Positions 1-23,787 of a stretch of 64,000 nucleotides of DNA are shown piece by piece. The DNA comes from Basidiobolus meristosporus CBS 931.73. Lineage: Eukaryota; Fungi; Basidiobolomycota. The stretch is taken from assembly GCA_002104905.1 (NCBI GenBank), contig MCFE01000062.1, forward strand, positions 1-64,000, written 5' to 3'. How positions within the stretch are numbered: the first letter of the stretch is position 1; the number at the start of each line of letters is the position of its first letter. Below the pieces are notes generated by a model. That model did no database searches and was not told the origin of the DNA. It worked only from the letters and a program-made list of their open reading frames with translations. The position numbers were made by a program, and so were the translations under genes.

Positions 1-1389
1 GCCTAGGTCAATGCTATTTGAGAGTGGTGTGTATCAGTATTTTCCAGTACCAACTTACAGGATTGTTAGCATAGATGAATAGCTTATTTTGACTTCCTAT
101 TTACGTTAAGAATTTTGGTACATTTGGCCACTAGTTGTCGTAGCATTTTTGATTGTGTTAAACTTATGAGGAGTGAGGTTGATTTAATAAAAAAGAGAAG
201 TATCAGAGGCTGAAGCCAGTGCCGTGTGCCATTAATGGCACCTTTTGTGCATCATCACATATACGGTGCAATGAATATTATTCAAGCACAAATAGCGGAG
301 ATGTGGTTTGAGTACCTCTAGCATACCCAATATTCACACGTTAACCATAAGCAGCGGCTATTATAATGAGCAACTTCGCAAGTACTTTCTCACCCACGTT
401 AACCAACATTTCATGTATTCACACAGTCTATATATGGACATCCACAGCAACCTTACCTAACTCTAACCTACCTTCAATTGGTAGCTTATTTTTGAAACAC
501 TCTATAGGTGTTTCGAAAATTTTCCCCAGTGCATCTCGGCCGAATAATGCATGTCCCCGGGCTTCCCAAAATACTCAATCGGGGCAGTATTCACAATTGT
601 AGATGTTTCTCATGCCATTACTTGAAAACCCGGTTTTTTATCCCAGACATCGGTACAAGGCGTGGCCAAATTCGTGATCAAGAGAATGCCTTACAATCAT
701 GCCCAAGTGGCTGGCAGTTTTAGAATGGCCATTTGTTGTTTTCACATAGTCTGTTACACTAGTATTCCCTCTCACTGCCCACCATTACAGCTTGCAAGCG
801 CATCTGCGTGACAGTTTATTTCCACAGTTGTCGAATGATTGCTGTAGAGGTCGACTAAATAGTCAAGATCTACCAGGCTCTATTTTCAATAGACTCACAG
901 TCCAAATGACCGTTTCGGTTGCGATCTTCCCTTGTGAAACAATCATATGGACTCCTCTCATTCCTGAGTACAAGAGCTACGCAAGATCATTGGGCTTGGA
1001 TACGATACCACTATGTGAATTATTTAGCCATAGCCAGATTAGTTGTGATTTGCCGAGTAAGATCCATGAAGTCGTTTGTGCTTGAATTAACAATCTTGTT
1101 ATAGTTGGGTGTTGTATAATGCATGTCCTGAAAAAAGACTGAGACTCGAGTGAGGCTACAATGATGATAAGAATGGAGGTTTTAATAAATGCAACATACA
1201 CGAAGATGTCGGGAACAAGCCTGTGGCACTGTATGGAGTCACAGGAATATATGACAAGTCCAATTAAGATACAGTTCACAGGAAGAAACTGCGCCTATGC
1301 TTTAGTGATTGGGAAAAAGTATTTAAGAGTTGACCCTGGCGAGAAGTAACCACAAGAGATTACTCACATTCCTCTGCCAAGCTATTAGT

Positions 1390-4300
1390 ATGTTAACCAT
1401 TAGAGAACCCATATTGGAAAACTCTGGAAGCCATGAAGATGGAAAACATCTAACGAAGCCCAGAGAGATGCAGTCAGACGCTTTTCCTTTTTCTCTGGAG
1501 CAAGAGCAAATATGGGCATTTGAGAAGGGTTCTTCTAATTCAGCAAACAACCTTCCGATAGCACTCTTATTGAGAGGGCCACTTGACTGCGATGCTTTGA
1601 AATGGTCCATAGCGCAATTGGTGAATCGTTACCCCCTTTTACGTAGTAAGGTCCTAGATGGTAAAGTTCCTCATCTACAAATAGGAATCACTGGGCCTAC
1701 AGCAATTCAATTAGAGGAGCATGGCGTTCCCAAGATTCCTACCGAAGAAAATATCCGCGAATGTATTGAAGAAGAGGTTAACCAGCCATTCAGTTTAACC
1801 CAAGAATATCCGATCCGCATAAAGCTTCTAAAGTTTATTCAAGACATCAGCCTGATGGTCATTACTGTTCATCGTTTAGCTGCAACGTTGGAAACTATGC
1901 ACTCTCTCCAAAGCAATCTTGCGGTATTATACAACTCGTATGGAGTGGCTAGAGAGCACAACTTTGAGGCTGTTCAAGAATTCAATCCTGAACAGCAATA
2001 TCAGAATATCTCTCAAACCATTTTGAAGGATCAAATTACATTTTGGGAAGAGCATCTAGCCGGACTGGCCCCCATTGGACTATCAACAGACAAGTTACGA
2101 CGAAACAACAGCATTAATCGTGCCCGCATACAAAAAATGCACATCCCAGAGGAGCTTTCAGTCAAGTTAACTCGTATCACAGAGCAGAATCAAACCGATT
2201 TGTATACCACGCTTCTGTCTGCTGTCCAGATACTTTTATACCTCTACACCAAAAATGAAGATATCGCTGTAGCCACTAACCTGCAATTCTATACTTCCAC
2301 TGTTAACACCACGCAAATAGTCAGGTCGGAAATCAAAGGCGAAAAGACTTTCGAAGAATTAATACAAGGAGTTAAACACAAGGTTATTGAAGTCTTAAAA
2401 CACCAGGGCTGGCCTTGGCAAAAGTACTTTTCCGAATCTAACACTAGAGATGAACAAGGATTCCCCAAAATAGAGGTGTACTTTGATGTTCATAATTGGA
2501 AACAAGAGGAAATTCAAATGCATGATCTCGAAGTCACCTGCCTAAACGATTTCGAGCGGTCTACATCATATGAACTGGAAATCCATGTTTTCAACGAAGG
2601 TACTGGCTTACAAATCCAGTTTATCTACCAGACCGATGTGTTACATATCACAACAGTGCAGAAAATGCAGCAGGTTCTCTTCAAGCTACTGGATTCCCTA
2701 ACTTCCGACTCCAGCCTTTCACTAGACAACGTCGAGTTGCTAGACAAACAAGAACGCGAAATGCTAATGCAGGATTGGAATGAGACTGAGTCAATATATC
2801 CAAATTCCCAATCAATCCCAGATGAATTCGAGAAGCAGGTCCTGGCTGCACCAGAGGCAGTAGCAGTAGTACACAATGATACTAAGTTGACCTACCAGCA
2901 ACTACACCAAATGTCCGATCGCCTTGCCTCTCATCTAGTCAGCCTGGGCGTGCGCATTGAGTCTGCCGTTGGTGTTTGCTTGGATCGCTCTCCCCTAATG
3001 GTGGTCGCCTTGTTGGCCATCCTCAAGGCTGGCGGTGCCTACGTCCCACTTGACTCCCAGTATCCCTCCGAAAGACTGCAGTTCATGCTTTCCGACACAG
3101 AGGCCACCGTCGTGATTTGCCAGAAATCAAACATGGCCAGCATACCCAAGGGAGAGTACAAGCTGGTATGCCTGGATGAGGAGATGGATAGTCTGATGAG
3201 TGGCCCGTACACCCCGACACCAAGTCGGTCAACCTCATCCAACCTTGCTTACATCATATATACCTCAGGGTCCACCGGAACTCCTAAGGGTGTTTTGGTT
3301 GAGCAACGGTCAGTGGTCCGCCTGGTCAAGAACACCGACTATGTGAACATCCAGGCAGGCGACAGCATTGCCCACATCTCCAGCACTTCATTCGATGCTG
3401 CAACATTCGAGGTTTGGGGGGCTCTGCTCAATGGCGCCACAGTCGTATGCATGAGTCATGCTGAGGTGATTGACCTGAACGTCTTGGCCAAGAACATGGC
3501 AAAATACTCGGTAACCACCATGTTCCTGACCACCGCTTTGTTCAACCGCATAGTCGAGGATTCCCCCGATGTGTTTGTCAGTGTGAAGCAGGTAATGTTC
3601 GGAGGCGAGGCTGTCGACCATCGCTCTGTCCAAAGGTTCCTTGCCCTACCAGATCGACCAAGGCTTCTCCATGTTTACGGCCCTACGGAAAACACCACGT
3701 TCTCAACCTGGTATGAGGTGGACCACATCTCAAGCAACATCCCCATCGGAAAGCCCATCGCCAACAGCAAGGCCTACGTCCTCGATCACCAGCTCTTCCC
3801 TGTTCCTGTCGGCTTTGTGGGTGAGCTTTGTGTCGCTGGGGATGGCTTGGCTAGAGGCTACCTCAATAGGCCAGACCTGACTGCTCAGAAGTTCGTGGTC
3901 AACCCCAATCCGGAATGCAACGGCGAGATTCTCTATCGCACTGGAGATCTCGCACGCTACAGAAGTGACGGGAACCTGGAGTTTGTTGGGCGTATGGATC
4001 ATCAAGTCAAGGTCCGCGGATTCCGGATTGAGTTGGGCGAGGTTGAGAATGCACTCCTACAGCAGGACTCAATCAAGGAATGTGTGGTTGTGGCCCGCGA
4101 AGACCTCTCGGGAGAGAAGCAGCTGGTTGGCTATGTGGTGGTCAATGGGGAGACGACCTCTGGAATGGATGTCCAACAAGTGGATGAGTGGGAGACCGTG
4201 TTCGACCAGCATGTCTACGAGGAGCTTGGAAATGATATAGCCGAGCCATCATTCAACATCACCGGGTGGAAATGTACCCTCACCGGGGAAGATATTCCAT

Positions 4301-7300
4301 CAGATGAAATGCGAGAGTGGCTGAGAGATACCATATCCGGCATCAGAAGCCTTGGAGGTCAGGACATCCTTGAAATTGGCTGCGGTACTGGAATGTTGCT
4401 CTTTGAGATTGCCCCTCATTGTAGGCGCTACCTGGGCACGGATGTCTCCAGCGCGGCTCTCTCGTACGTCAGCAGGTACCTCGATACCTACTCACTCCGT
4501 GATACTGTCCAGCTCGAGCAGCGTGGTGGTGACCAACTGGAAGATATGGTGGAGCAAAGCTTCGACACTGCGATCTGCAACTCTGTGGCCCAGTACTTTC
4601 CCAATATCGACTATCTCAGGGCGGTGATCACACGAGTGGTCAAGCTACTTCGCCCCGGAGGCCACTTCTTCCTTGGAGATATGCGTAGTCTCGTCCTCCT
4701 CAAGCATTTCCACTCCTCCATGGAGCTCCACAAAGCTCACAGCGACCTCAAGGTCTCCGAGCTGCAGCAAATCATCTCAGATCGAATGCTGAGCGAGAAA
4801 GAGCTGCTTGTCGATCCAGCCTTCTTCTTTGCTCTCAAGGAAGAGATCCCGGAGATCTCCCACGTGGATATTCTGACCAAGTCCGGGGATAGTCTCAACG
4901 AGCTCACCCAATATCGTTACCAAGCGATTATTCATGTTGGCCCTGGCAGCGACCGAGAGGTCGTGGAACACTGGCTAGACTATCAAGAGGCCAGCCTGAC
5001 CCTCGAGAGAGTCGAGGAGCAGCTTCTGCTAAGTCGGCCTCAGTGCCTCGCCCTGGAGAATGTTCCCAACATCCGGCTATCCCGCGAGGTTGCTCTCGTC
5101 AAGCTTCTGGAGGCCGAGCAGTCCAAAGATTTGACAGTCGCGAGGGTACGAGAACTGCTCGAGAAGGAAGCACCAACTGGAGTGAAAGTGGATGATCTGT
5201 ACACTCTTGCTGAGAAGACAGGATACCATGTGAGCGTCAGCTGGAACAGACAGCTACGCGACGGAAGCTTTGATGTGATTTTCAGCAAGCGACAAGGTAC
5301 TGAAAGTCTTCCTCCACGCCACCTATTCAAAGAGCCAGAGTTCTATGCTTGGAAGTGGAAGTCCTATGGCAACAACCCTATGCACGAGGCAGTCAACAAG
5401 CAGTTCGTCCCACGCTTGCGGGATCAGCTACGTGCAGTGTTGCCCAAGTTCATGGTCCCAAGTGCGATAGTCATCCTCGATGCTCTCCCTCTCATGCCCA
5501 ATGGTAAGATCAACCGCCGAGCACTGCCTGCACCTGGATCCCATCAGGTCGGCGATGATGCCGCCTATGTGCCCCCCAGAACCCCATTAGAGCTGGCAAT
5601 CGGAAGCATTGTGGCCGAGATCCTTGGCTTCGAGAGGGTCAGCATTCACGACAACTTCTTCGACTTGGGAGGCCATTCCCTGTCAGCCACCAAGGTGATG
5701 TCTCGTGTCCGCATCATAGTGAAGCAGGAAGTGCCACTGAAGATGCTCTTCGAAGCACCCACCGTCGCATCCTTGAGTGAAAGACTGGAAGAAATGATCA
5801 ATGAGAACACCGAGGTTGATGAATCGGTCCCTGTGCTGAGGAGACTTGATCGTGGGGAAGAAATTCCGCTGTCGTTTGCGCAGGAGAGACTGTGGTTTAT
5901 GAACGAACTGGTTCCTAATAGCCCTTTTTATAATATTCCACTGGTCCTTACACTAAATGGGCATTTAAACGAATGCGCGTTGAAATCGTCAATCGAGTCG
6001 ATTTTGAATCGTCATGAAGCCTTGAGAACTGTATTTCCGGTGGTGGACGGGAAGCCTATCCAACGAATTGAAGGCAGTACTTCTATTCAATGGGAGATTG
6101 AAGACATATCGCAGCATTCGAACTGTAAAGAGCTACTTAAATCGAGAATCACGGAGGAGTCAGTGAAGCCGTTTGACTTGGTTAGAGGCCCGGTAATCCG
6201 GTTTAATGTTATCCGTGTTGCTCCCCAGGAACATGTGCTCTTGATTATTTTGCATCATATTGTTTCCGACGGATGGTCTATTACTCTTATTCAGGAGGAA
6301 CTATCTGCTCTGTATAGCTCTCACATACATGGAGATCAGCCACAACTCTCAAGCTTACCAATTCAATATGCCGATTTTTCAGTGTGGCAGCGGGAGTGGC
6401 TACAAGGTGAGAATTTAGATCGACAGATGAAATATTGGAAGGGACAGCTTGAAGGAATTGCAAATTTGGCATTGCCAACAGACTACCCAAGAGCATCAAT
6501 GATGAATTTCCAAGGTGCTGTAGTGAGCACCCAAATACCCCGTGGTTTGACTCAGCGATTGGTTGATATCTGTCAGAAAAAGGGAACCACCCTGTTTATG
6601 ACGCTTTTGGCTGCATTCGAAATTTTGTTGTATCGCTATACTGAGCAGGAAGATATTGTGATTGGCTCCCCGATCGCAAATCGCAACCGAAAAGAGATCG
6701 AAGGTTTGATTGGGTTTTTCGTAAATACCCAGGTTCTTCGGGTACATATTGAGCACGACTTGACCTTCTCGAACCTCCTATCTCGCGTGAAGGCAGTAAC
6801 CCTGGATGCTTACAGCCATCAGGATGTACCATTCGAGCAAATCGTCGCGGAGCTTCAACCAGAGCGAGACCTTAGCCGTAATCCATTGGTTCAGGTGATG
6901 TTTGCTTTGCAAGAAGTGTTGATAGACGAATTTCCGTTCGGTGACATGACAGCAACTTCAGTAAGCTCCAACGAGATCACCACAAGATTTGACCTTGAAG
7001 TGCACTTCTGGAAGCATAATGAGGGGCTCAAAGCCGACTTCATCTACAGTACAAGTCTTTTCAAGTCGGAAACAATGGAGCGAATGCTACGCCACTTGCA
7101 TAGAATATTGGAAGCCGTGGCCGAGGATCCATATCAGCCCATTGGCAATATTGATATTTTGGATCCTTCGGAGCGACAAAAATATCTGATCGACTGGAAC
7201 CCGATTGACAAGACTCCTCGCGATGGCAAATCCATCGTAGGTGCGTTTGAGGATCAAGTACGAAATACTCCCGACGCCGTAGCTGTGATCCAGGATGAGT

Positions 7301-10300
7301 TGACTCTCACATATCTCCAATTACAAGAGCAGTCCAATCAGCTAGCTAGATACCTGATGAGCATTGGTGTCGAAACCGAGTCGTACGTTGGTATATGTAT
7401 GGAACGTTCGCCGCTAATGATTATCGCACTACTGGCTATACTCAAAGCTAGAGCGGCCTATGTCCCACTTGATTCCCAATCACCACCAGATAGACTGGCA
7501 CACATACTGACAGACACTAGGGCGACGGTTGTAATCTGTCAAAAGTCAACTATGAGCATTTTACCGGATGGTGACTATAAGAATGTGTGTCTTGATCTAG
7601 AGATCCCTGGGTTGTTAGACCTTTCTCCAGATCGCATCGAAAACGCACCCACCCCTAACAACCTTGCGTATATTATATACACCTCAGGTTCCACGGGAAC
7701 ACCCAAAGGGGTTCTTATCGAACATCGTTCTGTCGTTGGTATGGTAAAAGATGTTCAATATCTCAGTATATGTAATGAGGACAAAGTATCACATATTGCT
7801 AGTCCATCGTTTGATGCCGCTGTGTTCGAGATATGGGGATCCCTTCTTAACGGCGCAATGCTGGTATGCTTTAGCCGGGAAGATATTCTTGACCTGGGGG
7901 TCTTTTCGAAGAAAGTCGCCTCATATGGGGTGAATACTCTCTTCTTGACCACAGCGCTCTTCAACCATTGCGTTGAGTCTGCACCTGGACTTTTTGATCG
8001 AGTTGACAATGTTCTGATTGGTGGTGAGCAGGCTGATCATCGTAGAGTCAAGCAGTTCTTGGAATTGTCTACTGGCGGTAGACTATTGAATATGTATGGC
8101 CCTACTGAAAATTCCACCTTTTCTACCTGGCACGAGATTACTCAGCAGTACGATACAGTTCCCATTGGAAAGCCTATTACAGGTAGACGCGCCTATATTC
8201 TCGATAGATCTCTGAGACCGGTTCCTGTGGGTGTAATCGGCGAGTTATGCGTTGCCGGAGGAGGGCTGGCTAGAGGCTATCTTAACCGAGAACAAGCTAC
8301 TTCCCAAAGCTTCGTCATTAACCCAAACAAAGAATGTAATGGCGAGGTTATCTATCGTACCGGAGATCGGGCTCGTTTAATGAATGATGGTAATATACAA
8401 TTTGTTGGTCGTATCGATCACCAAGTGAAAATCCGTGGCTATCGAATCGAGCTGGGTGAGATAGACGGTGTGTTGCAGCGTAACAAGTCTGTCGCACAAA
8501 GTTATGTTACGACCAAATCACTCTCAGCAGATGAGAAGAGTATAGTGGCATATGTTGTGATGAGCAAGGAAGCGCCACCCCTCAGTCTTCCTTCACTAAC
8601 GGAATATCTGGCCTCGAAACTCCCCAAATACATGATGCCAACTGCGATAATTATTCTGGATCAAATGCCATTATTACCTAGTGGCAAGCTGGACTTCAAG
8701 GCGTTACCGAATCCTGGAGCTCAAAACACTCTCTCTCATGTAGCCTACGTAGCACCGCGAGATTTTACTGAGCAATGCATTGCTGAAGCTTGGCAAGAAG
8801 TCCTGAATATTGAAAGAGTTGGAATTTATGACAATTTCTTCGATCTTGGTGGCCACTCGCTTTCAGCAACAAAAGCAATCTCCCGTATAGGGCATTTATT
8901 CAAGAAAGAGATAGCATTGAAATGGATCTTCGAATTTCCCACAGTGATCTCGTTGGGCCAAAAGGTATCTGAGGTTCTCGGAAGTAATAGCTGCTCTATG
9001 AATTCGCCGATAGTGAAGCAGCAGAAAAAAAACACATTGCAAATGTCATTTGCCCAAGAACGACTGTGGTTTATGAATCAGTTGATGCCTGATAATCCAT
9101 TTTACAACATGCCGCTTGCCCTGAATATCAAGGGCAAATTAGATATCCAGGTTCTGGAGTCCGTGATCAACACAGTTGTCAAGCGTCATGATATCCTTAG
9201 AACCACATTCGGGAATTCGGGATGCAACCCTATTCAAAAGATTAACCCCCATAGCGAGTTTCTGCTTCAAATGGTAGATATTTCAAAATCTCCTGGAAAT
9301 ACTCGGGAGCTGAGGGCGTATATTACATCCGAATCACAAAAACCGTTCGATTTGGTCAATGGCCCAGTTATACGGGTGAATTTAGTTAAAGTCGGCGAGG
9401 AAGAGCATATTCTTCTGATCGTCCTTCATCACATCATCTCTGACGGTTGGTCCATCACTGTGTTACAAGAAGAGCTTTCCTTGTTATATAGGGCCTATTC
9501 ACAGGGCTTACCGTCCCCGCTGCATGAACTAACTATTCAGTACGCCGATTTCGCAGTATGGCAAAGGGAATGGTTACAAGGTGAAAACTTCGAGAAGCAG
9601 ATGCAGTACTGGAAAGATCAATTGAGTGGAATTGGAGACTTATCGCTGCCCACGGATTACATTCGACCACCTGTGTTAAGCTACAATGGAGGGTTAGAGC
9701 AATTGGAACTTTCTGCTTCCCTTACTAATGATTTACGCGACCTGAGTAAGAAGGAATCGTCTACTTTATTCATGACCCTCTTAGCCGCATTTGAGGTACT
9801 GCTATTTAGATACACAGGGCAGGAAGATATTGCGATCGGCTCTCCGATTGCGAATAGAAATCGAAAGGAAATTGAGCGCCTCATCGGTTTCTTCGTAAAT
9901 ACTCAGGTGATACGTGTTCAGGTTGATCGTGAGGCAACTTTCAATGAGCTAGTATCCCGCGTGAAGGAGGTAACCTTGGGAGCGTATAGTCATCAAGATG
10001 TGCCATTCGAACAAATTGTTGCTGAGCTACAACCCGAGAGAGACTTGAGTCGCAATCCATTAGTTCAAGTGATGTTCGTTTTGCAAGATGCAACCGTGGA
10101 CGCCTTTACTTTTGGAGACCTAAATGCTACCTTGGTGAACACTGACCGAATTAGTACACGTTTTGATTTAGAAGTACATTTCTGGAAACGTGATGAAGGA
10201 TTGAAGGCAGATTTCATCTACAGTACTGACCTGTTCAGCCCTAAAACCATGAAACACATGCTTTTAGACTTGCATAAGATACTGCAGATGGTGGCAACCA

Positions 10301-13300
10301 ACCCTGATCTTCCTATTGGCGATCTGAACATGCTGGATTCCGCCGAAAGAGGTAGTCTGCTAGTTGATTGGAATAATACATCAACAGACTATCCACGAGA
10401 CAATTCCTTGGTGGCCATTTTTAAGAATCAAGTTCAAAGCACACCTGAGGCAGTAGCAGTAGTACACAATGATACTAAGCTGACCTACCAGCAACTACAC
10501 CAAATGTCCGATCGCCTTGCCTCTCATCTAGTCAGCCTGGGCGTGCGCATTGAGTCTGCCGTTGGTGTTTGCTTGGATCGCTCTCCCCTAATGGTGGTCG
10601 CCTTGTTGGCCATCCTCAAGGCTGGCGGTGCCTACGTCCCACTTGACTCCCAGTATCCCTCCGAAAGACTGCAGTTCATGCTTTCCGACACAGAGGCCAC
10701 CGTCGTGATTTGCCAGAAATCAAACATGGCCAGCATACCCAAGGGAGAGTACAAGCTGGTATGCCTGGATGAGGAGATGGATAGCCTGATGAGTGGCCCG
10801 TACACCCCGACACCAAATCGGTCAACCTCATCCAACCTTGCTTACATCATATATACCTCGGGGTCCACCGGAACTCCTAAGGGTGTTTTGGTTGAGCAAC
10901 GGTCAGTGGTCCGCCTGGTCAAGAACACCGACTATGTGAACATCCAGGCAGGCGACAACATTGCCCACATCTCCAGCACTTCATTCGATGCTGCAACATT
11001 CGAGGTTTGGGGGGCTCTGCTCAATGGCGCCACAGTCGTATGCATGAGTCATGCTGAGGTGATTGACCTGAACGTCTTGGCCAAGAACATGGCAAAATAC
11101 TCGGTAACCACCATGTTCCTGACCACCGCTTTGTTCAACCGCATAGTCGAGGATTCCCCCGATGTGTTTGTCAGTGTGAAGCAGGTGATGTTCGGAGGCG
11201 AGGCTGTCGACCATCGCTCTGTCCAAAGGTTCCTTGCCCTACCAGATCGACCAAGGCTTCTCCATGTTTACGGCCCTACGGAAAACACCACGTTCTCAAC
11301 CTGGTATGAGGTGGACCACATCTCAAGCAACATCCCCATCGGAAAGCCCATCGCCAATAGCAAGGCCTACGTCCTCGATCACCAGCTCTTCCCTGTTCCT
11401 GTCGGCTTTGTGGGTGAGCTTTGTGTCGCTGGAGATGGCTTGGCTAGAGGCTACCTCAATAGGCCAGACCTGACTGCTCAGAAGTTCGTGGTCAACCCCA
11501 ATCCGGAATGCAACGGCGAGATTCTCTATCGCACTGGAGATCTCGCACGCTACAGAAGTGACGGGAACCTGGAGTTTGTTGGGCGTATGGATCATCAAGT
11601 CAAGGTCCGCGGATTCCGGATTGAGTTGGGCGAGGTTGAGAATGCACTCCTACAGCAGGACTCAATCAAGGAATGTGTGGTTGTGGCCCGCGAAGACCTC
11701 TCGGGAGAGAAGCAGCTGGTTGGCTATGTGGTGGTCAATGGGGAGACGACCTCTGGAATGGATGTCCAACAAGTGGATGAGTGGGAGACCGTGTTCGACC
11801 AGCATGTCTACGAGGAGCTTGGAAATGATATAGCCGAGCCATCATTCAACATCACCGGGTGGAAATGTACCCTCACCGGGGAAGATATTCCATCAGATGA
11901 AATGCGAGAGTGGCTGAGAGATACCATATCCGGCATCAGAAGCCTTGGAGGTCAGGACATCCTTGAAATTGGCTGCGGTACTGGAATGTTGCTCTTTGAG
12001 ATTGCCCCTCATTGTAGACGCTACCTCGGCACGGATGTCTCCAGCGCGGCTCTCTCGTACGTCAGCAGGTACCTCGATACCTACTCACTCCGTGATACTG
12101 TCCAGCTCGAGCAGCGTGGTGGTGACCAACTGGAAGATATGGTGGAGCAAAGCTTCGACACTGCGATCTGCAACTCTGTGGCCCAGTACTTTCCCAATAT
12201 CGACTATCTCAGGGCGGTGATCACACGAGTGGTCAAGCTACTTCGCCCCGGAGGCCACTTCTTCCTTGGAGATATGCGTAGTCTCGTCCTTCTGAAGCAT
12301 TTCCACTCCTCCATGGAGCTCCACAAAGCTCACAGCGACCTCAAGGTCTCCGAGCTGCAGCAAATCACCTCGGATCGAATGCTGAGCGAGAAAGAGCTGC
12401 TTGTCGATCCAGCCTTCTTCTTTGCTCTCAAGGAAGAGATCCCGGAGATCTCCCACGTGGATATTCTGACCAAGTCCGGGGATAGTCTCAACGAGCTCAC
12501 CCAATATCGTTACCAAGCGATTATTCATGTTGGCCCTGGCAGCGACCGCGAGGTCGTGGAACACTGGCTAGACTATCAAGAGGCCAGCCTGACCCTCGAG
12601 AGAGTCGAGGAGCAGCTTCTGCTAAGTCGGCCTCAGTGCCTCGCCCTGGAGAATGTTCCCAACATCCGGCTATCCCGCGAGGTTGCTCTCGTCAAGCTTC
12701 TGGAGGCCGAGCAGTCCAAAGATTTGACAGTCGCGAGGGTACGAGAACTGCTCGAGAAGGAAGCACCAACTGGAGTGAAAGTGGATGATCTGTACACTCT
12801 TGCTGAGAAGACAGGATACCATGTGAGCGTCAGCTGGAACAGACAGCTACGCGACGGAAGCTTTGATGTGATTTTCAGCAAGCGACAAGGTACTGAAAGT
12901 CTTCCTCCACGCCACCTATTCAAAGAGCCAGAGTTCTATGCTTGGAAGTGGAAGTCCTATGGCAACAACCCTATGCACGAGGCAGTCAACAAGCAGTTCG
13001 TCCCACGCTTGCGGGATCAGCTACGTGCAGTGTTGCCCAAGTTCATGGTCCCAAGTGCGATAGTCATCCTCGATGCTCTCCCTCTCATGCCCAATGGTAA
13101 GATCAACCGCCGAGCACTGCCTGCACCTGGATCCCATCAGGTCGGCGATGATGCCGCCTATGTGCCCCCCAGAACCCCATTAGAGCTGGCAATCGGAAGC
13201 ATTGTGGCCGAGATCCTTGGCTTCGAGAGGGTCAGCATTCACGACAACTTCTTCGACTTGGGAGGCCATTCCCTGTCAGCCACCAAGGTGATGTCTCGTG

Positions 13301-16300
13301 TCCGCATCATAGTGAAGCAGGAAGTGCCACTGAAGATGCTCTTCGAAGCACCCACCGTCGCATCCTTGAGTGAAAGACTGGAAGAAATGATCAGTGAGAA
13401 CACCGAGGTTGATGAATCGGTCCCTGTGCTGAGGAGACTTGATCGTGGGGAAGAAATTCCGCTGTCGTTTGCGCAGGAGAGACTGTGGTTTATGAACGAA
13501 CTGGTTCCTAATAGCCCTTTTTATAATATGCCGCTGACCTTGACACTAAGTGGAACTCTCAATATTGATGCTCTGAAGAAATCTATCCTGAATATCATTC
13601 ATCGGCATGAAACCTTAAGAACAACTTTCCAACTCTCCTCTAACGGTCCAGTTCAAACGATTAAGCCTGTCTCCGATTTTTCTACGTCTCTTGTTGATTT
13701 CGTCGATATAACCTCCAATCAACAGTCGCTTCGAACTATTATTGCTCAGGAATCTGCTAAGCCTTTTAGCTTGAAGGATGGACCCTTAATTAGAGTCAAG
13801 CTCATACAAATTGCATCAGGAGAGTATGTACTAGTTATTGTTATACACCACATTGTATCCGATGGGTGGTCAATAGCTGTGTTGCAGAAGGAGCTTGCAG
13901 CCTTTTATGAATCTAATATATGTTCTAAGCCACAACCCTTATCCGAACTATCTATTCAGTACGTGGACTTTGCCGTATGGCAGCGTGAATGGCTACAAGG
14001 TGTAAGGCTGCAGAAGCAATCAAGTTACTGGAAAAAACAACTACAAGGCATTACACCACTAGCTTTGGCTACTGATAAGATACGCCCAGCAATATCGAGT
14101 CACCATGGCCAGACTTATCAACTATTTTTATCAGGACCATTGACTAGAAAGCTACGAGCCCTGGGTCAAAACCATGGTGCAACATTATTTATGACACTGT
14201 TGGCAGCTTTCCAGGTCTTGCTCTACAAGAGCACCGGTCAGAACGACATCGCCGTTGGTTCTCCTATTGCCAATCGTAATCGAAAAGAAATTGAGGCACT
14301 GATTGGTTTCTTTGTCAACACCTTGGTGCTTCGTGTGCAGGTTAACCCGGACGCGACGTTCAGTGATATACTTAACCAAGTCAAAGCCACTACCCTCGAT
14401 GCTTATGGCAATCAGGATTTACCATTTGAAAAGGTGGTAGCAGAATTACAGCCTGAACGCGATCTGAGTCGTAATCCACTAGTACAGGTGATCTTTGCAC
14501 TGCATGAATTGTCAATTGACAAATTCGAAATGAAAGATCTAAAGGTCAATGTCTACAACGATGACCTGGTAACATCCCGCATGGATTTAGAGGTGCACAT
14601 CTATCCACAAGATTATGGACTGAGGATAGAAGCAATCTACTGTAGTGATTTGTTTGTTTCAAGCACCATTGAGCAATTGTTCAAAGGTTTCCTTAACATC
14701 TTGGAATCTATTACTGCAGACTCCCATCAAACGGTGGGAAGAATTAGTTTACTTGATGCCTCCGAACGCGAATCTCTGCTTTTAAACCGTAATCTGACAC
14801 ACTCCCAGTACCCATGCGACCAATCCATGGTCGACCTCTTTGAGAGTCAAGTCAAAATAATTCCCGATGATATTGCTGTGGTAGACAATGACCTTCAACT
14901 TACCTACCAGCAACTACACCAAATGTCCGATCGCCTTGCCTCTCATCTAGTCAGCCTGGGCGTGCGCATTGAGTCTGCCGTTGGTGTTTGCTTGGATCGC
15001 TCTCCCCTAATGGTGGTCGCCTTGTTGGCCATCCTCAAGGCTGGCGGTGCCTACGTCCCACTTGACTCCCAGTATCCCTCCGAAAGACTGCAGTTCATGC
15101 TTTCCGACACAGAGGCCACCGTCGTGATTTGCCAGAAATCAAACATGGCCAGCATACCCAAGGGAGAGTACAAGCTGGTATGCCTGGATGAGGAGATGGA
15201 TAGTCTGATGAGTGGCCCGTACACCCCGACACCAAATCGGTCAGCCTCATCCAACCTTGCTTACATCATATATACCTCGGGGTCCACCGGAACTCCTAAG
15301 GGCGTTTTGGTTGAGCAACGGTCAGTGGTCCGCCTGGTCAAGAACACCGACTATGTGAACATCCAGACAGGTGACAACATTGCCCACATCTCCAGCACTT
15401 CATTCGATGCTGCAACATTCGAGGTTTGGGGGGCTCTGCTCAATGGTGCCACGGTTGTTTGTATAAAGCATTCCGAAGTTATTGACTTCCAACTGCTTTC
15501 CAAGAATCTATCTACCCACTCCGTAAGCATTCTATTCTTGACTACAGCACTATTCAACCGCATAGTCGAGGATGCCCCCAATGTGTTTGACAGTGTGAAG
15601 CAGGTGATGTTCGGAGGTGAGGCTGCAGATCCCCACTCTATTCAACAATTTCTCTCGCTGGTCAACCGGCCAAGATTGCTGAATATTTACGGCCCTACCG
15701 AAAACACTGCATTCTCAACCTGGTATGAGGTGGACCACATCTCAAGCAACATCCCCATCGGAAAGCCCATCGCCAATAGCAAGGCCTACGTCCTCGATCA
15801 CCAGCTCTTCCCTGTTCCTGTCGGCTTTGTGGGTGAGCTTTGTGTCGCTGGGGATGGCTTGGCTAGAGGCTACCTCAATAGGCCAGACTTGACTGCTCAG
15901 AAGTTCGTGGTCAACCCCAATCCGGAATGCAACGGCGAGATTCTCTATCGCACTGGAGATCTCGCACGCTACAGAAGTGACGGGAACCTGGAGTTTGTTG
16001 GGCGTGTGGATCGTCAAGTGAAGATTCGTGGCTTCCGAATCGAGTTAGATGAAATCAAATCCAAATTAATGGAGCACTCTGGCGTCAAGGAATGCGCTGT
16101 GCTAGTAAATGAGAAGTCTGGTGTAAAGCGCATTATAGCTTATGTTGTCAAAAGTGCAGATTCTCTAGATTCTAACGAGGACACTCTACTGAACTACCTT
16201 GCCAAATCCCTACCAAGGTATATGCTACCACACGCATTAATCATGCTAGATGGCCTTCCGCTTCTACCTAGTGGGAAGTTGGATACTCAATCTCTCGCCG

Positions 16301-17388
16301 CATTAACTGATAACTCCTTAACCTCAAAGTCTCACGTTGAGCCACGCACTCCTCTAGAAAGCAGCCTCGCAAGTATCATGGCCGAGGTACTATCTCTGGA
16401 ACAAGTTGGTATCGATGATAGCTTTTTCGATCTTGGTGGGCATTCGTTATTGTCGATTCATTTCATTGCAAGAATTCGGAAGTCTTTGGAAACGAACGTC
16501 AGCTTACAAGCTCTCTTTGAGGCACCAACTGTAGCTATGTTGGCGAAATATATCAGCAAGAACCAGAATGGGGAGCACGATATTATGGAAAATCCAGTAA
16601 CCGTACTCCGCAAAGGAAGTGACGAAACTCCTATTGTCATGGTTCATGCCATTGGCGGTGGTCTTTCGTGTTACCAGCCACTTCTCGAAGCATTTTGTCA
16701 AGAACAGACTATATACGGAGTGTATTCCTCTGATTTCCTCGGACTTAGTCAGAGACAAACATTCCCAGATATGAAATCCATGGCTGAGTATTATGTTCAG
16801 TCGTTACTGAGACTCTCCAACGCAAAGAGGTTTATACTTGGCGGTTGGTCATATGGAGGCAATGTTGCCTTTGAGATGGCCATCCAACTACAGAAGATGG
16901 GAATCACGGTGCCGATAGTGGTGCTTTTTGACTCATATCCCCTATTCGGAGTTCCCAATCACGAGTTGTTCTCAGTCCCGTTGACCACAATGATTACCAC
17001 TTTGATGAACCAGATGCAAGAATCCACGGAGATTGTGTCGGAGGAGTTAATCATGGTGCGAGACCTATTCGGATTGAGTACGAACATGACCAGAGACGAT
17101 GAGGTCACCCTTGAGCTACTTACCAGCGCCCTTAAGAGGATTAACCACATGCAGGAATATCTTCCTGACCCCTATGAGGGCACAGTATACCAGTTTAGAA
17201 GCTCCGACGTCCAAGTGTACGATCCCGAAGATACTGAGCGTGTCTCGAGTCAGGCAAGACAATGGTCCGAATTCGTCAATGGGGAGTACATCACCGAAAC
17301 AGTGGCTGGAACCCATTTCACCATAATGCAGTCGCCTTATGTTGAAACTATTGCCACAAAACTGGAGCCAATTGTTAGAGGATTATAA
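1390..17388 (+). CDS. Tetramodular NRPS, C0-A1(nMT)-T1-C2-A2-T2-C3-A3(nMT)-T3-C4-A4-T4-TE, single exon (~5330 aa)
   Basis: Uninterrupted ORF. Four A domains (YIIYTSGSTGTPKG, YGPTE, YRTGD), four T domains (FFDLGGHSL), three intact C domains (HHIxSDG), two SAM-binding N-methyltransferases (ILEIGCGTG) inserted between A8 and A9, and a terminal thioesterase (GWSYGG...GTHF). First ATG is 1390, alternative 1468; the ORF track's 1330 start is TTG. Confidence 0.97.
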   Translation: MLTIREPILENSGSHEDGKHLTKPREMQSDAFPFSLEQEQIWAFEKGSSNSANNLPIALLLRGPLDCDALKWSIAQLVNRYPLLRSKVLDGKVPHLQIGITGPTAIQLEEHGVPKIPTEENIRECIEEEVNQPFSLTQEYPIRIKLLKFIQDISLMVITVHRLAATLETMHSLQSNLAVLYNSYGVAREHNFEAVQEFNPEQQYQNISQTILKDQITFWEEHLAGLAPIGLSTDKLRRNNSINRARIQKMHIPEELSVKLTRITEQNQTDLYTTLLSAVQILLYLYTKNEDIAVATNLQFYTSTVNTTQIVRSEIKGEKTFEELIQGVKHKVIEVLKHQGWPWQKYFSESNTRDEQGFPKIEVYFDVHNWKQEEIQMHDLEVTCLNDFERSTSYELEIHVFNEGTGLQIQFIYQTDVLHITTVQKMQQVLFKLLDSLTSDSSLSLDNVELLDKQEREMLMQDWNETESIYPNSQSIPDEFEKQVLAAPEAVAVVHNDTKLTYQQLHQMSDRLASHLVSLGVRIESAVGVCLDRSPLMVVALLAILKAGGAYVPLDSQYPSERLQFMLSDTEATVVICQKSNMASIPKGEYKLVCLDEEMDSLMSGPYTPTPSRSTSSNLAYIIYTSGSTGTPKGVLVEQRSVVRLVKNTDYVNIQAGDSIAHISSTSFDAATFEVWGALLNGATVVCMSHAEVIDLNVLAKNMAKYSVTTMFLTTALFNRIVEDSPDVFVSVKQVMFGGEAVDHRSVQRFLALPDRPRLLHVYGPTENTTFSTWYEVDHISSNIPIGKPIANSKAYVLDHQLFPVPVGFVGELCVAGDGLARGYLNRPDLTAQKFVVNPNPECNGEILYRTGDLARYRSDGNLEFVGRMDHQVKVRGFRIELGEVENALLQQDSIKECVVVAREDLSGEKQLVGYVVVNGETTSGMDVQQVDEWETVFDQHVYEELGNDIAEPSFNITGWKCTLTGEDIPSDEMREWLRDTISGIRSLGGQDILEIGCGTGMLLFEIAPHCRRYLGTDVSSAALSYVSRYLDTYSLRDTVQLEQRGGDQLEDMVEQSFDTAICNSVAQYFPNIDYLRAVITRVVKLLRPGGHFFLGDMRSLVLLKHFHSSMELHKAHSDLKVSELQQIISDRMLSEKELLVDPAFFFALKEEIPEISHVDILTKSGDSLNELTQYRYQAIIHVGPGSDREVVEHWLDYQEASLTLERVEEQLLLSRPQCLALENVPNIRLSREVALVKLLEAEQSKDLTVARVRELLEKEAPTGVKVDDLYTLAEKTGYHVSVSWNRQLRDGSFDVIFSKRQGTESLPPRHLFKEPEFYAWKWKSYGNNPMHEAVNKQFVPRLRDQLRAVLPKFMVPSAIVILDALPLMPNGKINRRALPAPGSHQVGDDAAYVPPRTPLELAIGSIVAEILGFERVSIHDNFFDLGGHSLSATKVMSRVRIIVKQEVPLKMLFEAPTVASLSERLEEMINENTEVDESVPVLRRLDRGEEIPLSFAQERLWFMNELVPNSPFYNIPLVLTLNGHLNECALKSSIESILNRHEALRTVFPVVDGKPIQRIEGSTSIQWEIEDISQHSNCKELLKSRITEESVKPFDLVRGPVIRFNVIRVAPQEHVLLIILHHIVSDGWSITLIQEELSALYSSHIHGDQPQLSSLPIQYADFSVWQREWLQGENLDRQMKYWKGQLEGIANLALPTDYPRASMMNFQGAVVSTQIPRGLTQRLVDICQKKGTTLFMTLLAAFEILLYRYTEQEDIVIGSPIANRNRKEIEGLIGFFVNTQVLRVHIEHDLTFSNLLSRVKAVTLDAYSHQDVPFEQIVAELQPERDLSRNPLVQVMFALQEVLIDEFPFGDMTATSVSSNEITTRFDLEVHFWKHNEGLKADFIYSTSLFKSETMERMLRHLHRILEAVAEDPYQPIGNIDILDPSERQKYLIDWNPIDKTPRDGKSIVGAFEDQVRNTPDAVAVIQDELTLTYLQLQEQSNQLARYLMSIGVETESYVGICMERSPLMIIALLAILKARAAYVPLDSQSPPDRLAHILTDTRATVVICQKSTMSILPDGDYKNVCLDLEIPGLLDLSPDRIENAPTPNNLAYIIYTSGSTGTPKGVLIEHRSVVGMVKDVQYLSICNEDKVSHIASPSFDAAVFEIWGSLLNGAMLVCFSREDILDLGVFSKKVASYGVNTLFLTTALFNHCVESAPGLFDRVDNVLIGGEQADHRRVKQFLELSTGGRLLNMYGPTENSTFSTWHEITQQYDTVPIGKPITGRRAYILDRSLRPVPVGVIGELCVAGGGLARGYLNREQATSQSFVINPNKECNGEVIYRTGDRARLMNDGNIQFVGRIDHQVKIRGYRIELGEIDGVLQRNKSVAQSYVTTKSLSADEKSIVAYVVMSKEAPPLSLPSLTEYLASKLPKYMMPTAIIILDQMPLLPSGKLDFKALPNPGAQNTLSHVAYVAPRDFTEQCIAEAWQEVLNIERVGIYDNFFDLGGHSLSATKAISRIGHLFKKEIALKWIFEFPTVISLGQKVSEVLGSNSCSMNSPIVKQQKKNTLQMSFAQERLWFMNQLMPDNPFYNMPLALNIKGKLDIQVLESVINTVVKRHDILRTTFGNSGCNPIQKINPHSEFLLQMVDISKSPGNTRELRAYITSESQKPFDLVNGPVIRVNLVKVGEEEHILLIVLHHIISDGWSITVLQEELSLLYRAYSQGLPSPLHELTIQYADFAVWQREWLQGENFEKQMQYWKDQLSGIGDLSLPTDYIRPPVLSYNGGLEQLELSASLTNDLRDLSKKESSTLFMTLLAAFEVLLFRYTGQEDIAIGSPIANRNRKEIERLIGFFVNTQVIRVQVDREATFNELVSRVKEVTLGAYSHQDVPFEQIVAELQPERDLSRNPLVQVMFVLQDATVDAFTFGDLNATLVNTDRISTRFDLEVHFWKRDEGLKADFIYSTDLFSPKTMKHMLLDLHKILQMVATNPDLPIGDLNMLDSAERGSLLVDWNNTSTDYPRDNSLVAIFKNQVQSTPEAVAVVHNDTKLTYQQLHQMSDRLASHLVSLGVRIESAVGVCLDRSPLMVVALLAILKAGGAYVPLDSQYPSERLQFMLSDTEATVVICQKSNMASIPKGEYKLVCLDEEMDSLMSGPYTPTPNRSTSSNLAYIIYTSGSTGTPKGVLVEQRSVVRLVKNTDYVNIQAGDNIAHISSTSFDAATFEVWGALLNGATVVCMSHAEVIDLNVLAKNMAKYSVTTMFLTTALFNRIVEDSPDVFVSVKQVMFGGEAVDHRSVQRFLALPDRPRLLHVYGPTENTTFSTWYEVDHISSNIPIGKPIANSKAYVLDHQLFPVPVGFVGELCVAGDGLARGYLNRPDLTAQKFVVNPNPECNGEILYRTGDLARYRSDGNLEFVGRMDHQVKVRGFRIELGEVENALLQQDSIKECVVVAREDLSGEKQLVGYVVVNGETTSGMDVQQVDEWETVFDQHVYEELGNDIAEPSFNITGWKCTLTGEDIPSDEMREWLRDTISGIRSLGGQDILEIGCGTGMLLFEIAPHCRRYLGTDVSSAALSYVSRYLDTYSLRDTVQLEQRGGDQLEDMVEQSFDTAICNSVAQYFPNIDYLRAVITRVVKLLRPGGHFFLGDMRSLVLLKHFHSSMELHKAHSDLKVSELQQITSDRMLSEKELLVDPAFFFALKEEIPEISHVDILTKSGDSLNELTQYRYQAIIHVGPGSDREVVEHWLDYQEASLTLERVEEQLLLSRPQCLALENVPNIRLSREVALVKLLEAEQSKDLTVARVRELLEKEAPTGVKVDDLYTLAEKTGYHVSVSWNRQLRDGSFDVIFSKRQGTESLPPRHLFKEPEFYAWKWKSYGNNPMHEAVNKQFVPRLRDQLRAVLPKFMVPSAIVILDALPLMPNGKINRRALPAPGSHQVGDDAAYVPPRTPLELAIGSIVAEILGFERVSIHDNFFDLGGHSLSATKVMSRVRIIVKQEVPLKMLFEAPTVASLSERLEEMISENTEVDESVPVLRRLDRGEEIPLSFAQERLWFMNELVPNSPFYNMPLTLTLSGTLNIDALKKSILNIIHRHETLRTTFQLSSNGPVQTIKPVSDFSTSLVDFVDITSNQQSLRTIIAQESAKPFSLKDGPLIRVKLIQIASGEYVLVIVIHHIVSDGWSIAVLQKELAAFYESNICSKPQPLSELSIQYVDFAVWQREWLQGVRLQKQSSYWKKQLQGITPLALATDKIRPAISSHHGQTYQLFLSGPLTRKLRALGQNHGATLFMTLLAAFQVLLYKSTGQNDIAVGSPIANRNRKEIEALIGFFVNTLVLRVQVNPDATFSDILNQVKATTLDAYGNQDLPFEKVVAELQPERDLSRNPLVQVIFALHELSIDKFEMKDLKVNVYNDDLVTSRMDLEVHIYPQDYGLRIEAIYCSDLFVSSTIEQLFKGFLNILESITADSHQTVGRISLLDASERESLLLNRNLTHSQYPCDQSMVDLFESQVKIIPDDIAVVDNDLQLTYQQLHQMSDRLASHLVSLGVRIESAVGVCLDRSPLMVVALLAILKAGGAYVPLDSQYPSERLQFMLSDTEATVVICQKSNMASIPKGEYKLVCLDEEMDSLMSGPYTPTPNRSASSNLAYIIYTSGSTGTPKGVLVEQRSVVRLVKNTDYVNIQTGDNIAHISSTSFDAATFEVWGALLNGATVVCIKHSEVIDFQLLSKNLSTHSVSILFLTTALFNRIVEDAPNVFDSVKQVMFGGEAADPHSIQQFLSLVNRPRLLNIYGPTENTAFSTWYEVDHISSNIPIGKPIANSKAYVLDHQLFPVPVGFVGELCVAGDGLARGYLNRPDLTAQKFVVNPNPECNGEILYRTGDLARYRSDGNLEFVGRVDRQVKIRGFRIELDEIKSKLMEHSGVKECAVLVNEKSGVKRIIAYVVKSADSLDSNEDTLLNYLAKSLPRYMLPHALIMLDGLPLLPSGKLDTQSLAALTDNSLTSKSHVEPRTPLESSLASIMAEVLSLEQVGIDDSFFDLGGHSLLSIHFIARIRKSLETNVSLQALFEAPTVAMLAKYISKNQNGEHDIMENPVTVLRKGSDETPIVMVHAIGGGLSCYQPLLEAFCQEQTIYGVYSSDFLGLSQRQTFPDMKSMAEYYVQSLLRLSNAKRFILGGWSYGGNVAFEMAIQLQKMGITVPIVVLFDSYPLFGVPNHELFSVPLTTMITTLMNQMQESTEIVSEELIMVRDLFGLSTNMTRDDEVTLELLTSALKRINHMQEYLPDPYEGTVYQFRSSDVQVYDPEDTERVSSQARQWSEFVNGEYITETVAGTHFTIMQSPYVETIATKLEPIVRGL
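1468..2760 (+). other. NRPS N-terminal condensation-like domain with degenerate active site
   Basis: Has C-domain motifs (FSLEQEQIW; LYTTLLSAVQILLYLYTKNEDIAV), but HHxxxDG reads HRLAATL at ~1870-1890. Boundaries approximate. Confidence 0.8.
2854..5936 (+). repeat. Direct repeat copy 1 (A1-nMT-T1-linker plus start of C2), 3083 bp
   Basis: Matches 10447-13529 at constant offset 7593 with about 16 substitutions counted by eye and no indels. Confidence 0.95.
4150..5390 (+). other. N-methyltransferase domain embedded in A1
   Basis: VDEWETVFD...GWKCTLTGEDIPSDEMREW...ILEIGCGTGMLLF...NSVAQYFP, followed by return to A9/A10 (LPKFMVPS...PNGKINRRALP). Boundaries approximate. Confidence 0.92.
10447..13529 (+). 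repeat. Direct repeat copy 2 (A3-nMT-T3-linker plus start of C4), 3083 bp
   Basis: Near-identical to 2854-5936; duplicated antisense ORFs in the ORF track show the same 7593 offset. Confidence 0.95.
11743..12983 (+). other. N-methyltransferase domain embedded in A3
   Basis: Near-identical copy of the module 1 nMT at offset +7593. Confidence 0.92.
14902..15452 (+). repeat. Partial third copy, N-terminal part of A4
   Basis: Near-identical to 2890-3440 (offset 12012). Confidence 0.9.
15712..16005 (+). repeat. Partial third copy, C-terminal part of A4 core
   Basis: Near-identical to 3700-3993 (offset 12012). Confidence 0.9.
16620..17385 (+). other. Terminal thioesterase domain
   Basis: VHAIGGGLSCY, GWSYGG nucleophile elbow, FDSYP, VAGTHFTIM. 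Boundaries approximate. Confidence 0.9.
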
Positions 17389-21965: not shown

Positions 21966-23787
21966 ATGTCAACTGTAGTGGGTGACAAAGCCGACAGGTT
22001 GGATCCCGGGAACTCTTCGCAAGAGAAAGTACAAAAACTCTCGGCGAATGTTGAGAGTGAGCCAAGTGCGCCTATTCCAACCTTTCTTGAGGAATCGGAA
22101 AGTGAAAAAGATGCACGCATACGAAAGTTATTTAACTTCTTCGATGTGGACAACAAAGGCGTGCTTGACGTGGTAGCAATAATAAACGCTTTAGACGCCG
22201 TAACGTCCTCGCCTATTAGGATGGAGTACGCCCAACAACTCTTGCTAAGATGTGATACGTCCCATGACGACCTGATTCAGTACGAGGAATTCCGTGCATT
22301 TGTGGAAGAAAAGGAGATGGAACTTTGGAAACTGTTCTCGGAGATAGATAGAAACAATGATAACGAACTCCAGAAATGCGAGATTGAAGGCGCATTGAAA
22401 AAGGCTAATATTCATATATCTAAGGACGAATTGGATACTTTCTTCAACAAGATGGACAAGGATAACAACGGGGTTATCGACTTTGATGAATGGCGGGATT
22501 TTCTTTTAGTACGTGGTAGCGCTTCCATTACTCTTCTGATAATGACTGTTATGGTAACGGTGTTGCATTTGATTTCCCTCGTTTCTAGCTTCTGCCACGT
22601 GAGACTACAATCTATGAGATTTGGCATTACCATCAAGCCATTGCCCATGTATCCATGGACGGTGAGATTGTTGTAAGCGGCAAAGGGAATTCATTAAGCG
22701 CATTCTTTGCCGGAGCGATAGCAGGCGCTGTAAGCCGTACCGCCACAGCTCCTCTCGACAGGCTTAAGGTATTCTTACAAACTCAAACAAAGGGACCGGT
22801 GTTGGCCATGCCAAAAAACCTATCGGAGACGAATATTGCCAAGAAAAGGGTTATTCTTGGTCTTTACCACAGAGTGAAGTCAGCTGCTACAACTATAGCC
22901 GACACTATGAGGCAGATTTATAGAAATGGGGGAGTGTCGAGTTTCTTCCGAGGTAACGGGTTGAACGTTGCGAAGATAATTCCGGAGTCGGCCATCAAAT
23001 TCTACACTTATGACAAAGTCAAAAAGTACCTCGCCAAGTACTTGAATGAAGAGGAAAAAACCTCGTCTAGTATATCTATGCGGTTCGTCGCTGGTGGGGC
23101 AGCAGGCCTTACAAGCCAGTTTTCTATATATCCCGTTGAAGTGTTAAAGACTCGGATTATGAGCTCTGCTGGGATGTCTAAATCCTCAACCAAAGGCGTC
23201 TTAAAATCAACCGCTACAAAAATGTGGAAAACCGGCGGCCTTACATCCTTCTACAAGGGCCTCACCCCAGCACTCATTGGTGTGATGCCATACGCAGCAA
23301 TTGATATGGGCTTATTCGAAACCCTAAGAGTAACATATACAAAGTACCTTCAATCTATCAGTAAGAATGAAGATGAGGCCCCAAGCGTATTGGCCTTACT
23401 TGGATGTGGAACTATCAGCGGCACTGTTGGCGCTACATCAGTTTACCCTTTGAATTTGGTTCGCACAAGGTAAGATGTATCTGCGGGCTGGCGGCGATTT
23501 GAGATATGTGTTTGATTTGTTTGTCGTGCAGGCTAATGGCACAGGGAACTCCTGGTCATCCATACACCTATGATGGTGTTATGGATGTGGTCAAGCGGAC
23601 GTATACACGTGAAGGAATCACAGGCTTCTACCGTGGATTAGTGCCAACACTTATAAAAGTGAGTCCACCATCTTACCATAAAGTATCACTATCTAAATGA
23701 CTCTCCTCTCTATAGGTGATCCCAGCCGTGAGCATCAGCTACGTGGTCTACGAGAAAACAAGGAGATTTATTGACAGTAACGAATGA
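21966..23787 (+). CDS. SAL1: Ca2+-binding mitochondrial ATP-Mg/Pi carrier (SCaMC/SAL1-like), multi-exon
   Basis: Four EF-hand-like loops (DVDNKGVLD, DTSHDDLIQYEEF, DRNNDNELQ, DKDNNGVIDFDEW) followed by three carrier repeats (TATAPLDRLKV, YPVEVLKTR, YPLNLVRTR; FFRGNGLNVAKIIPESAIKF). Confidence 0.92.

Follow-up and report, generated by a model that had tools for sequence, protein, structure and literature searches.

Probable gene conversion of a 3.1-kb adenylation–methyltransferase–carrier block between two modules of a fungal nonribosomal peptide synthetase gene

Concerted evolution of domains in nonribosomal peptide synthetases (NRPSs) and polyketide synthases (PKSs) is established (PMC4256081; PMC8097286), with ample bacterial examples that arose by internal recombination (PMC4256081). 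Medema et al. 2014 (PMC4256081) described it in, for example, the daptomycin/CDA/A54145 systems, syringopeptin, and the rapamycin family, and they modeled the domains concerned as “trapped” in a cycle of small divergence and re-homogenization, with the expectation that homogenized sets are interoperable. Baunach et al. 2021 (PMC8097286) described intragenomic replacement of adenylation (A) domains in mcyB/mcyC of microcystin synthetase and a general preference for exchange of the A-domain core (Acore), in which the linker between condensation (C) and A domains and the interface between the A subdomain (Asub) and the carrier (T) domain are kept. Engineered exchange units have fusion points of their own, at WNATE in the C–A linker (XU), within the C domain (XUC), or within the T domain (XUT; bioRxiv 10.1101/2022.12.02.518901). 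In this paper, we describe what we take, with a probability of about four in five, to be another instance of the process: a 3083-nt block that would have been copied by intragenic (ectopic, nonallelic) gene conversion from one module to a paralogous one within a single NRPS gene in the fungus Basidiobolus meristosporus CBS 931.73. The gene lies at 1390..17388 on the forward (+) strand of a 64,000-nt stretch (contig MCFE01000062.1, positions 1 to 64,000), which we call the window; all of the domains and tracts located below are on the same strand.

The gene is intronless and occupies a single uninterrupted open reading frame (ORF) in the ORF list (1330-17388, +, 5352 codons). Its called product begins at the ATG at 1390 and is 5332 aa long, and the database copy of that product (P0004) is also 5332 aa, is 100% identical, and has the same start. 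From Pfam and core-motif scans, the domain order reads C1-A1(MT)-T1-C2-A2-T2-C3-A3(MT)-T3-C4-A4-T4-TE, where MT is a methyltransferase domain and TE is a thioesterase; the repetition of C, A, and T in module order together with a release domain marks the protein as a predicted modular (type I) NRPS. The gene is very likely model 387529 of Tabima et al. 2020 (PMC7466969), who described that model (ORX93211.1) in this strain as a tetramodular NRPS having two N-methyltransferase domains along with a TE, and as a candidate for horizontal transfer from bacteria.

Modules 1 and 3 share a cassette. Its first copy (2854..5936) holds the whole of A1 (core, inserted N-methyltransferase, and Asub), T1, the T–C linker, and the first 25 codons of C2; its second (10447..13529) holds A3 and the MT inserted in it, T3, the linker, and 25 codons from the start of C4. 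Compared directly at a fixed offset of 7593, the two copies (3083 nt each, both in frame inside one ORF and in direct orientation) show 16 mismatches and no indels, which is to say 99.48% identity, and BLASTN widens the pair to 2849-5960 and 10442-13553 at 99.2% over 3112 nt. The original prediction, made from the letters of the window, had put about 16 substitutions, about 12 of them synonymous, and no indels between these same end points; offset comparison and codon listing bear it out exactly, and the near-identity holds in both kinds of pairwise alignment.

At the codon level, 12 of the 16 differences are synonymous, and the four that are not (S632N, S679N, I1149T, and N1491S) match the S/N, S/N, I/T, and N/S changes that had been seen beforehand; by type, there are 13 transitions and 3 transversions. 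Nei–Gojobori counting gives a synonymous divergence (dS) of 0.017 and a nonsynonymous divergence (dN) of 0.0017, with dN/dS = 0.10. Were the changes placed at random, 12 or more of 16 would be synonymous with P = 1.8e-5, or with P = 8.5e-4 when the observed transition bias is simulated. Because sequencing or polishing errors would not spare amino acids, the differences are not noise, and these probabilities contradict the refutation by sequencing noise that the original prediction had named. Both cassettes would appear to be functional and to have evolved under purifying selection from the time of their last identity. The 16 differences were not significantly clustered, as patchy conversion might have left them (largest gap 845 nt, P = 0.10), and a search of the cassette for nucleotide skew like that of GRINS found no intense GC or AT skew.

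The edges of the block can be placed to the base. On the left, the last mismatch ahead of the block is at 2853, and identity runs from codon 509, in P-EAVAVV, 22 codons past the WNETE (483-487) of the C–A linker and 11 codons ahead of the A1 core motif LTYQQL. On the right, identity is first broken at 5937, in the third position of codon 1536, right after SFAQERLWF...PFYN; this edge is 12 codons past SFAQERLWF (1515-1523) and, with the Pfam Condensation match starting at residue 1510, ~25 codons into that match. The breakpoints foreseen (PEAVAVV and ~25 codons into the next C domain) are therefore real, at codons 509 and 1535/1536, and their counterparts in module 3 are codons 3040 and 4067. 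Beyond the edges, nucleotide identity at offset 7593 drops to 25-60% within 100 nt. The tract ends fall in motifs common to all modules, P(E/D)AVAV and SFAQERLWFMN..PFYN, where short nucleotide homology is present.

What lies between and around the cassettes is much older. The unique segment between them (5937..10446, which comprises the rest of C2, A2, T2, C3, and the C3–A3 linker) shows old divergence from its paralogs and has a G+C content at third codon positions (GC3) of 0.42-0.48. Protein identity is 52-59% among C2, C3, and C4, taken pairwise, 59% between A2 and A1 or A3 (59.4% for the A1 core against A2), and 40-51% between T2 or T4 and the other T domains. A block of 99.48% identity between flanks that are ~50-60% identical cannot be of the same age as those flanks. 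In other words, a near-identical tract sits in register, without indels, between far more diverged homologous flanks, which is the pattern by which conversion is recognized. An old two-module duplication was tried as the source of the common offset and rejected, as C2 is nearer to C3 (59%) than to C4 (53%), and T2 and T4 are the most distant pair of T domains.

The fourth A domain is a mosaic of young and old pieces. Aligned at an offset of 12012 from A1, it has a first converted tract (14902..15446) that is ~99% identical to A1/A3 and includes an exact run of 302 nt; then an old island of 265 nt (15447..15711), 71% identical to A1 in nucleotides and 68% in amino acids, which holds the pocket region up to the YGPTE motif and in which A4 differs from A1 and A3; and then a second converted tract (15712..16005), ~98-100% identical to A1/A3, which ends at the A8 motif, the end of Acore, past which identity collapses again. 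Owing to these near-identical tracts, A4 is 88% identical overall to A1/A3. The list of diverged domains drawn up from the sequence was therefore correct for C2, C3, C4, and A2 (the 52-59% protein identity given above) but incomplete, since it put A4 with neither the diverged nor the similar domains. Multiple tracts with different end points are thus present in the gene, and since those in A4 end elsewhere than the main cassette does, the three A domains call for no fewer than two conversion events that differ in their end points. GC3 is 0.65 in both converted tracts, 0.51 in the old island, and 0.42 after the tracts, from which it would follow that GC-rich sequence entered A4 by conversion; that the old parts of A4 are AT-richer than its converted tracts points to copying from the cassette into A4 and not the reverse. 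At the eight A-core sites that differ between A1 and A3, A4 has the A3 base at six, and A3, the nearer copy, may have been the conversion partner.

Set beside the systems of Medema et al. (PMC4256081), this gene likewise has some paralogous domains of one assembly line homogenized while others escape. It differs in being a fungal nuclear gene of bacterial type, in offering one dated tract (dS 0.017) with edges at the level of the base pair, where the earlier evidence was clade patterns in trees, and in having a whole A–MT–T unit as its tract, coincident with a GC3 island. With mcyB/mcyC (PMC8097286), it shares nonreciprocal copying between A-domain segments of one pathway and a C–A linker that remains native, although the host here is a eukaryote and there is no sign that the product changed. 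The A4 tracts stop at the end of Acore, as do most of the exchanges in that survey; the main tract is far larger than an Acore swap, for it adds Asub, the inserted MT, T, the T–C linker, and the first C motif, and although it too leaves the C–A linker native, it moves Asub and T together. As in the XU, XUC, and XUT designs, a contiguous multidomain block stands in a new module context, apparently tolerated, with its left edge near the C–A linker, but the edges match none of those designs, being neither at WNATE, nor at the GGxS of the T domain, nor between the lobes of the C domain, nor in the next C–A linker. The idea that the block is a natural module-exchange unit therefore survives in one respect only: its ends do lie in conserved motifs, where homology permits a tract to end, but they are not the known exchange points, and nothing suggests a changed product. 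The process, in short, is a known one; this is a clean example of it in a less usual host, and no new kind of system is revealed.

How might such a block have come about? A break in or near one A–MT–T segment would have been repaired by homologous recombination templated by the A–MT–T of the other module, 7.6 kb off. The copied tract would have run from just inside the A domain to just beyond the first motif conserved in the C domain that follows, and the recipient would have been overwritten in register and nonreciprocally. Shorter tracts within the A core, made by the same process, would have carried cassette sequence into A4 and left the old island with two pocket residues in it. Since the last homogenization, both copies of the cassette would have gathered a few, mostly silent, mutations. 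We infer double-strand-break repair or synthesis-dependent strand annealing as the molecular route. The direct basis for conversion is the pattern of identity, the sharp edges in register, the several tracts, the signature of selection, and an island of composition.

That island coincides with the cassette tract, a coincidence that is new here and may be a hint of GC-biased conversion. GC-biased gene conversion is established in vertebrate multigene families under concerted evolution. GC3 is 0.62-0.64 over the A core, MT, Asub, and T of both cassettes and 0.41-0.48 over C1-C4, A2, and T2, so that converted sequence is richer than unconverted paralogous sequence (0.63 vs 0.41-0.48), as GC-biased conversion would have it. 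Maximum likelihood places the change points in GC3 at codons 519 and 1483 (module 1) and 3050 and 4057 (module 3), against identity edges of 509/1536 and 3040/4067; their support intervals of 2 log-likelihood units include the identity edge in two of four cases and stop 3 and 4 codons away from it in the remaining two. G+C at codon positions 1 and 2 is alike in A1 (0.49) and A2 (0.48), which limits the shift to silent sites. The likeness to the known paralog families is that GC3 is raised in the converting segment alone, with positions 1 and 2 unchanged; the difference is that the bias itself is putative here, the few polarized substitutions being uninformative. Most likely, the GC3 excess of the cassette arose in place. 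We infer that conversion has been both recurrent and GC-biased, which would account for a cassette GC3 of 0.63 against 0.41-0.48 elsewhere. It is a tentative step further, and one to which we would give rather less than even odds, to suppose that the A–MT–T block is a long-lived conversion domain, in which modules 1 and 3 and the A4 core have been re-homogenized often and GC-biased repair has built the 3-kb island.

An island of composition might also have come from outside. In that case, a GC-rich A–MT–T, taken from a different NRPS gene, in this fungus or a relative, or gained in a second bacterial transfer, would have replaced the A–T part of one module, been copied to the other and partly to A4, and so have reprogrammed the peptide. 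In favor of such an import, the cassette forms an island of sharply different composition (GC3 0.63 vs 0.41-0.48) whose edges match the identity edges, MT domains occur only within it, and the AT-richer old parts of A4 point to the cassette as the source; recurrent GC-biased conversion would give sharp edges too, because diverged flanks bar the extension of a tract. What the idea lacks is a donor. None was found for the 1027-aa cassette among 1.84 billion cluster representatives, the best match being at most 45% identical among the matches listed, and for the A1 core, identity reaches no more than 52.6% with any outsider among 503 fetched proteins, against 59.4% with A2. The outsiders nearest to the A1 core (NRPSs of Nostocales, P0020, P0228, and P0008) rank nearest to A2 and C4 too, at 48-49%, so that cassette and noncassette domains have the same outside relatives. 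In the published A-domain tree, the four A domains of model 387529 group together, and no other member of the clade is listed in the genome (PMC7466969). The absence of a donor, the closeness of A1 to A2, the common nearest outsiders, and the tree all argue that the cassette is an old in-gene paralog and not a recent foreign insert, and as import would, in addition, require at least three events in a short time, we regard it as unlikely.

The same library gave one oddity: the gene's own 5332-aa protein, which should outscore all others, is missing from the 150 top-ranked representatives retrieved with its own cassette, and it is either not in the representative library or stood for there by another sequence.

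A second alternative is that the gene recently grew. The original prediction had left the choice between recent intragenic duplication and ongoing gene conversion, and a shorter ancestor could have gained a module by duplication of the A–MT–T block or of a larger unit. One gene does, after all, contain two 3-kb blocks that are near-identical and run in the same direction; module duplication is a recognized path to multimodularity (PMC9205934); and a gene model from strain B9252 was reported with just two A domains of this clade (PMC7466969). However, a contiguous copy would have made C2/C4 or C1/C3 and A2/A4 as young as the block, and these are 26-59% identical; a block without a C domain cannot create a module; and this one fills a homologous position exactly in frame, with conserved motifs on either side. 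The B9252 assembly, moreover, is Illumina-only and fragmented, and a 3-kb repeat of 99.5% identity is expected to collapse in it, which makes the count of two uninformative. Register, lack of indels, old flanking C domains, and the separate tracts in A4 thus favor the conversion half of that choice, and a module-adding duplication is, in our view, very improbable. Least probable of all is that misassembly, or polishing against the wrong paralog, produced the second copy or its near-identity, for although assembly and polishing are known to go wrong at near-identical repeats, the copies stand in frame in different unique contexts within an ORF that is open over 5352 codons, their 16 differences are synonymous to a degree that errors are not, A4 has independent tracts, and the genome was assembled from PacBio reads with coverage of the gene at the scaffold mean (z = -0.157) (PMC7466969).

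Several observations weigh against gene conversion as we have drawn it and against its GC bias. The two cassette copies are known from assembled sequence. The event erased what it overwrote, and with it the marks of which module was the donor and of whether the recipient had an MT beforehand. Word-index searches for orthologs with the full-length protein and with the intercassette segment returned, among the best 120 by score, bacterial NRPSs at no more than 46% identity and the protein itself, lists from which short near-identical fragments could have escaped. At the seven A-core sites that can be polarized by A4 (the eighth, at 3594, was excluded because it is inside A4's diverged island), four changes are AT-to-GC and three are GC-to-AT, which is no bias, although the sites are few and A4 is a nonindependent outgroup. 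The end of the TE (~16855-17385) reaches a GC3 of ~0.61 without any repeat, one neighboring gene has a GC3 of 0.57, and the final 25 codons of the tract, at the start of C2/C4, have a GC3 of only 0.48. Conversion is therefore not the sole cause of variation in silent-site composition in this gene, and the basis for recurrent, GC-biased conversion is indirect.

A relative offers a faint parallel. A 250-aa query over the C3|A3 junction found two fragments from Basidiobolus ranarum (P0385 and P0386), on contigs of 1.3 kb, at 57-58% identity. Their C halves are 90% alike and are 65-69% identical to C2/C3 here, and their A parts are 67% alike; the fragments are too short and too far diverged to serve as orthologs. 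The pattern may be in the direction expected under homogenization of modules within a species, there on the C domain. The tiny size of the contigs suggests that repeats break that assembly.

The remaining features of the protein are those of an ordinary assembly line, with some exceptions. Pfam matches are to Condensation, AMP-binding, AMP-binding_C, PP-binding, and Thioesterase, and a motif scan finds the A3, A7, A8, and A10 core motifs and the LGGHSL carrier motif four times each, the HHxxxDG active site in C2, C3, and C4, and GWSYG in the TE (16630..17367; PF00975). The N-terminal condensation-like domain, C1 (1447..2799), lies outside the repeat, is just 26-29% identical in protein to C2-C4, and carries a degenerate HRLAATL (window ~1870-1890) where the catalytic HHxxxDG is expected; being confined to C1, the degenerate motif leaves the assignment of the whole protein to the NRPSs unaffected. 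C1 may be an inactive relic of past chain transfer to this protein by an upstream subunit, or else some other kind of domain with a structural or starter role. The cores of the S-adenosylmethionine (SAM)-dependent methyltransferases lie at 4357..4767 in module 1 (Pfam Methyltransf_12/23/25 and motif positions) and at 11950..12330 in module 3 (Pfam matches in the second half of the protein), with matches to Methyltransf_12/25/11/23 at aa 1010-1146 and 3541-3667. Both are inserted between A8 (aa 887 and 3418; GRMDHQVKVRG in module 1) and A10 (aa 1387 and 3918), so A1 and A3 are interrupted A domains with an embedded, predicted N-methyltransferase.

In a motif alignment, the pockets are similar across the four A domains, and A1 and A3 agree at all ten code positions, at none of which any of the four amino acid differences between the cassettes falls. 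Placed by GrsA numbering, the code is presumably D-A-F-F-M-G-V-T-F-K for A1 and A3, D-A-F-F-L-G-M-T-F-K for A2, and D-A-F-F-M-G-I-A-F-K for A4, which differs from A1/A3 at two positions, both in its old island. So placed, the codes suggest aliphatic substrates. A substrate call from the top PDB match, LgrA, was considered and rejected, since its score is the sum over two A domains and the pocket residues differ. If modules 1 and 3 do load and N-methylate the same aliphatic amino acid, as these codes would have it, the event was probably neutral for the product, which we would predict to be a TE-released peptide in which positions 1 and 3 hold one and the same N-methylated residue. Tabima et al. 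(PMC7466969) proposed, without confirming it, a link between this NRPS and the basidiosin cyclopentapeptides, and they reported the gene as the highest-expressed NRPS (74 transcripts per million) and its neighbors as including “carrier protein” and “transporter” genes.

The window as a whole is 44% G+C, and long ORFs are scarce in it, as expected of a eukaryote. Downstream of the NRPS gene come a mitochondrial-carrier gene with EF-hands and a sulfate permease. The former is seen as adjacent ORFs on the + strand, 21966-22676 (EF-hands) and 22655-23473 (mitochondrial-carrier repeats), which probably belong to a single spliced gene encoding a calcium-regulated mitochondrial carrier. That gene is probably the “carrier protein” assigned by antiSMASH to published cluster 5; the permease, with a STAS domain, is at 24442-26241 (-) and is probably the “transporter” of that cluster. 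A ThrE-family exporter also lies near (46354-48078, +), and neither it nor the permease is evidently linked to the peptide. An ORF at 49510-53100 (+) has the full set of domains of a cobalamin-dependent methionine synthase (MetH), namely S-methyl_trans, Pterin_bind, B12-binding, and Met_synt_B12, and is notable for a fungus; early-diverging fungi have been reported to retain B12-dependent enzymes.

What, then, does this gene tell us? A block made of the A core, an embedded MT, Asub, T, and the T–C linker is apparently tolerated in two module contexts while the C–A linker and most of the C domain remain native, and as its end points are known to the base, it could be of practical use in NRPS module recombination. 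Conversion would here be at work on a bacterial-type gene in the nucleus of a eukaryote. Of all the features, the GC3 island alone may merit further study; its coincidence with the tract is a testable hint of GC-biased conversion. If the block did prove to be a long-lived conversion domain with such a bias, the edges of the island would mark stable limits of exchange, codon composition alone could flag interchangeable NRPS blocks, and an early-diverging fungus would furnish direct evidence of GC-biased gene conversion, in a gene of bacterial origin.

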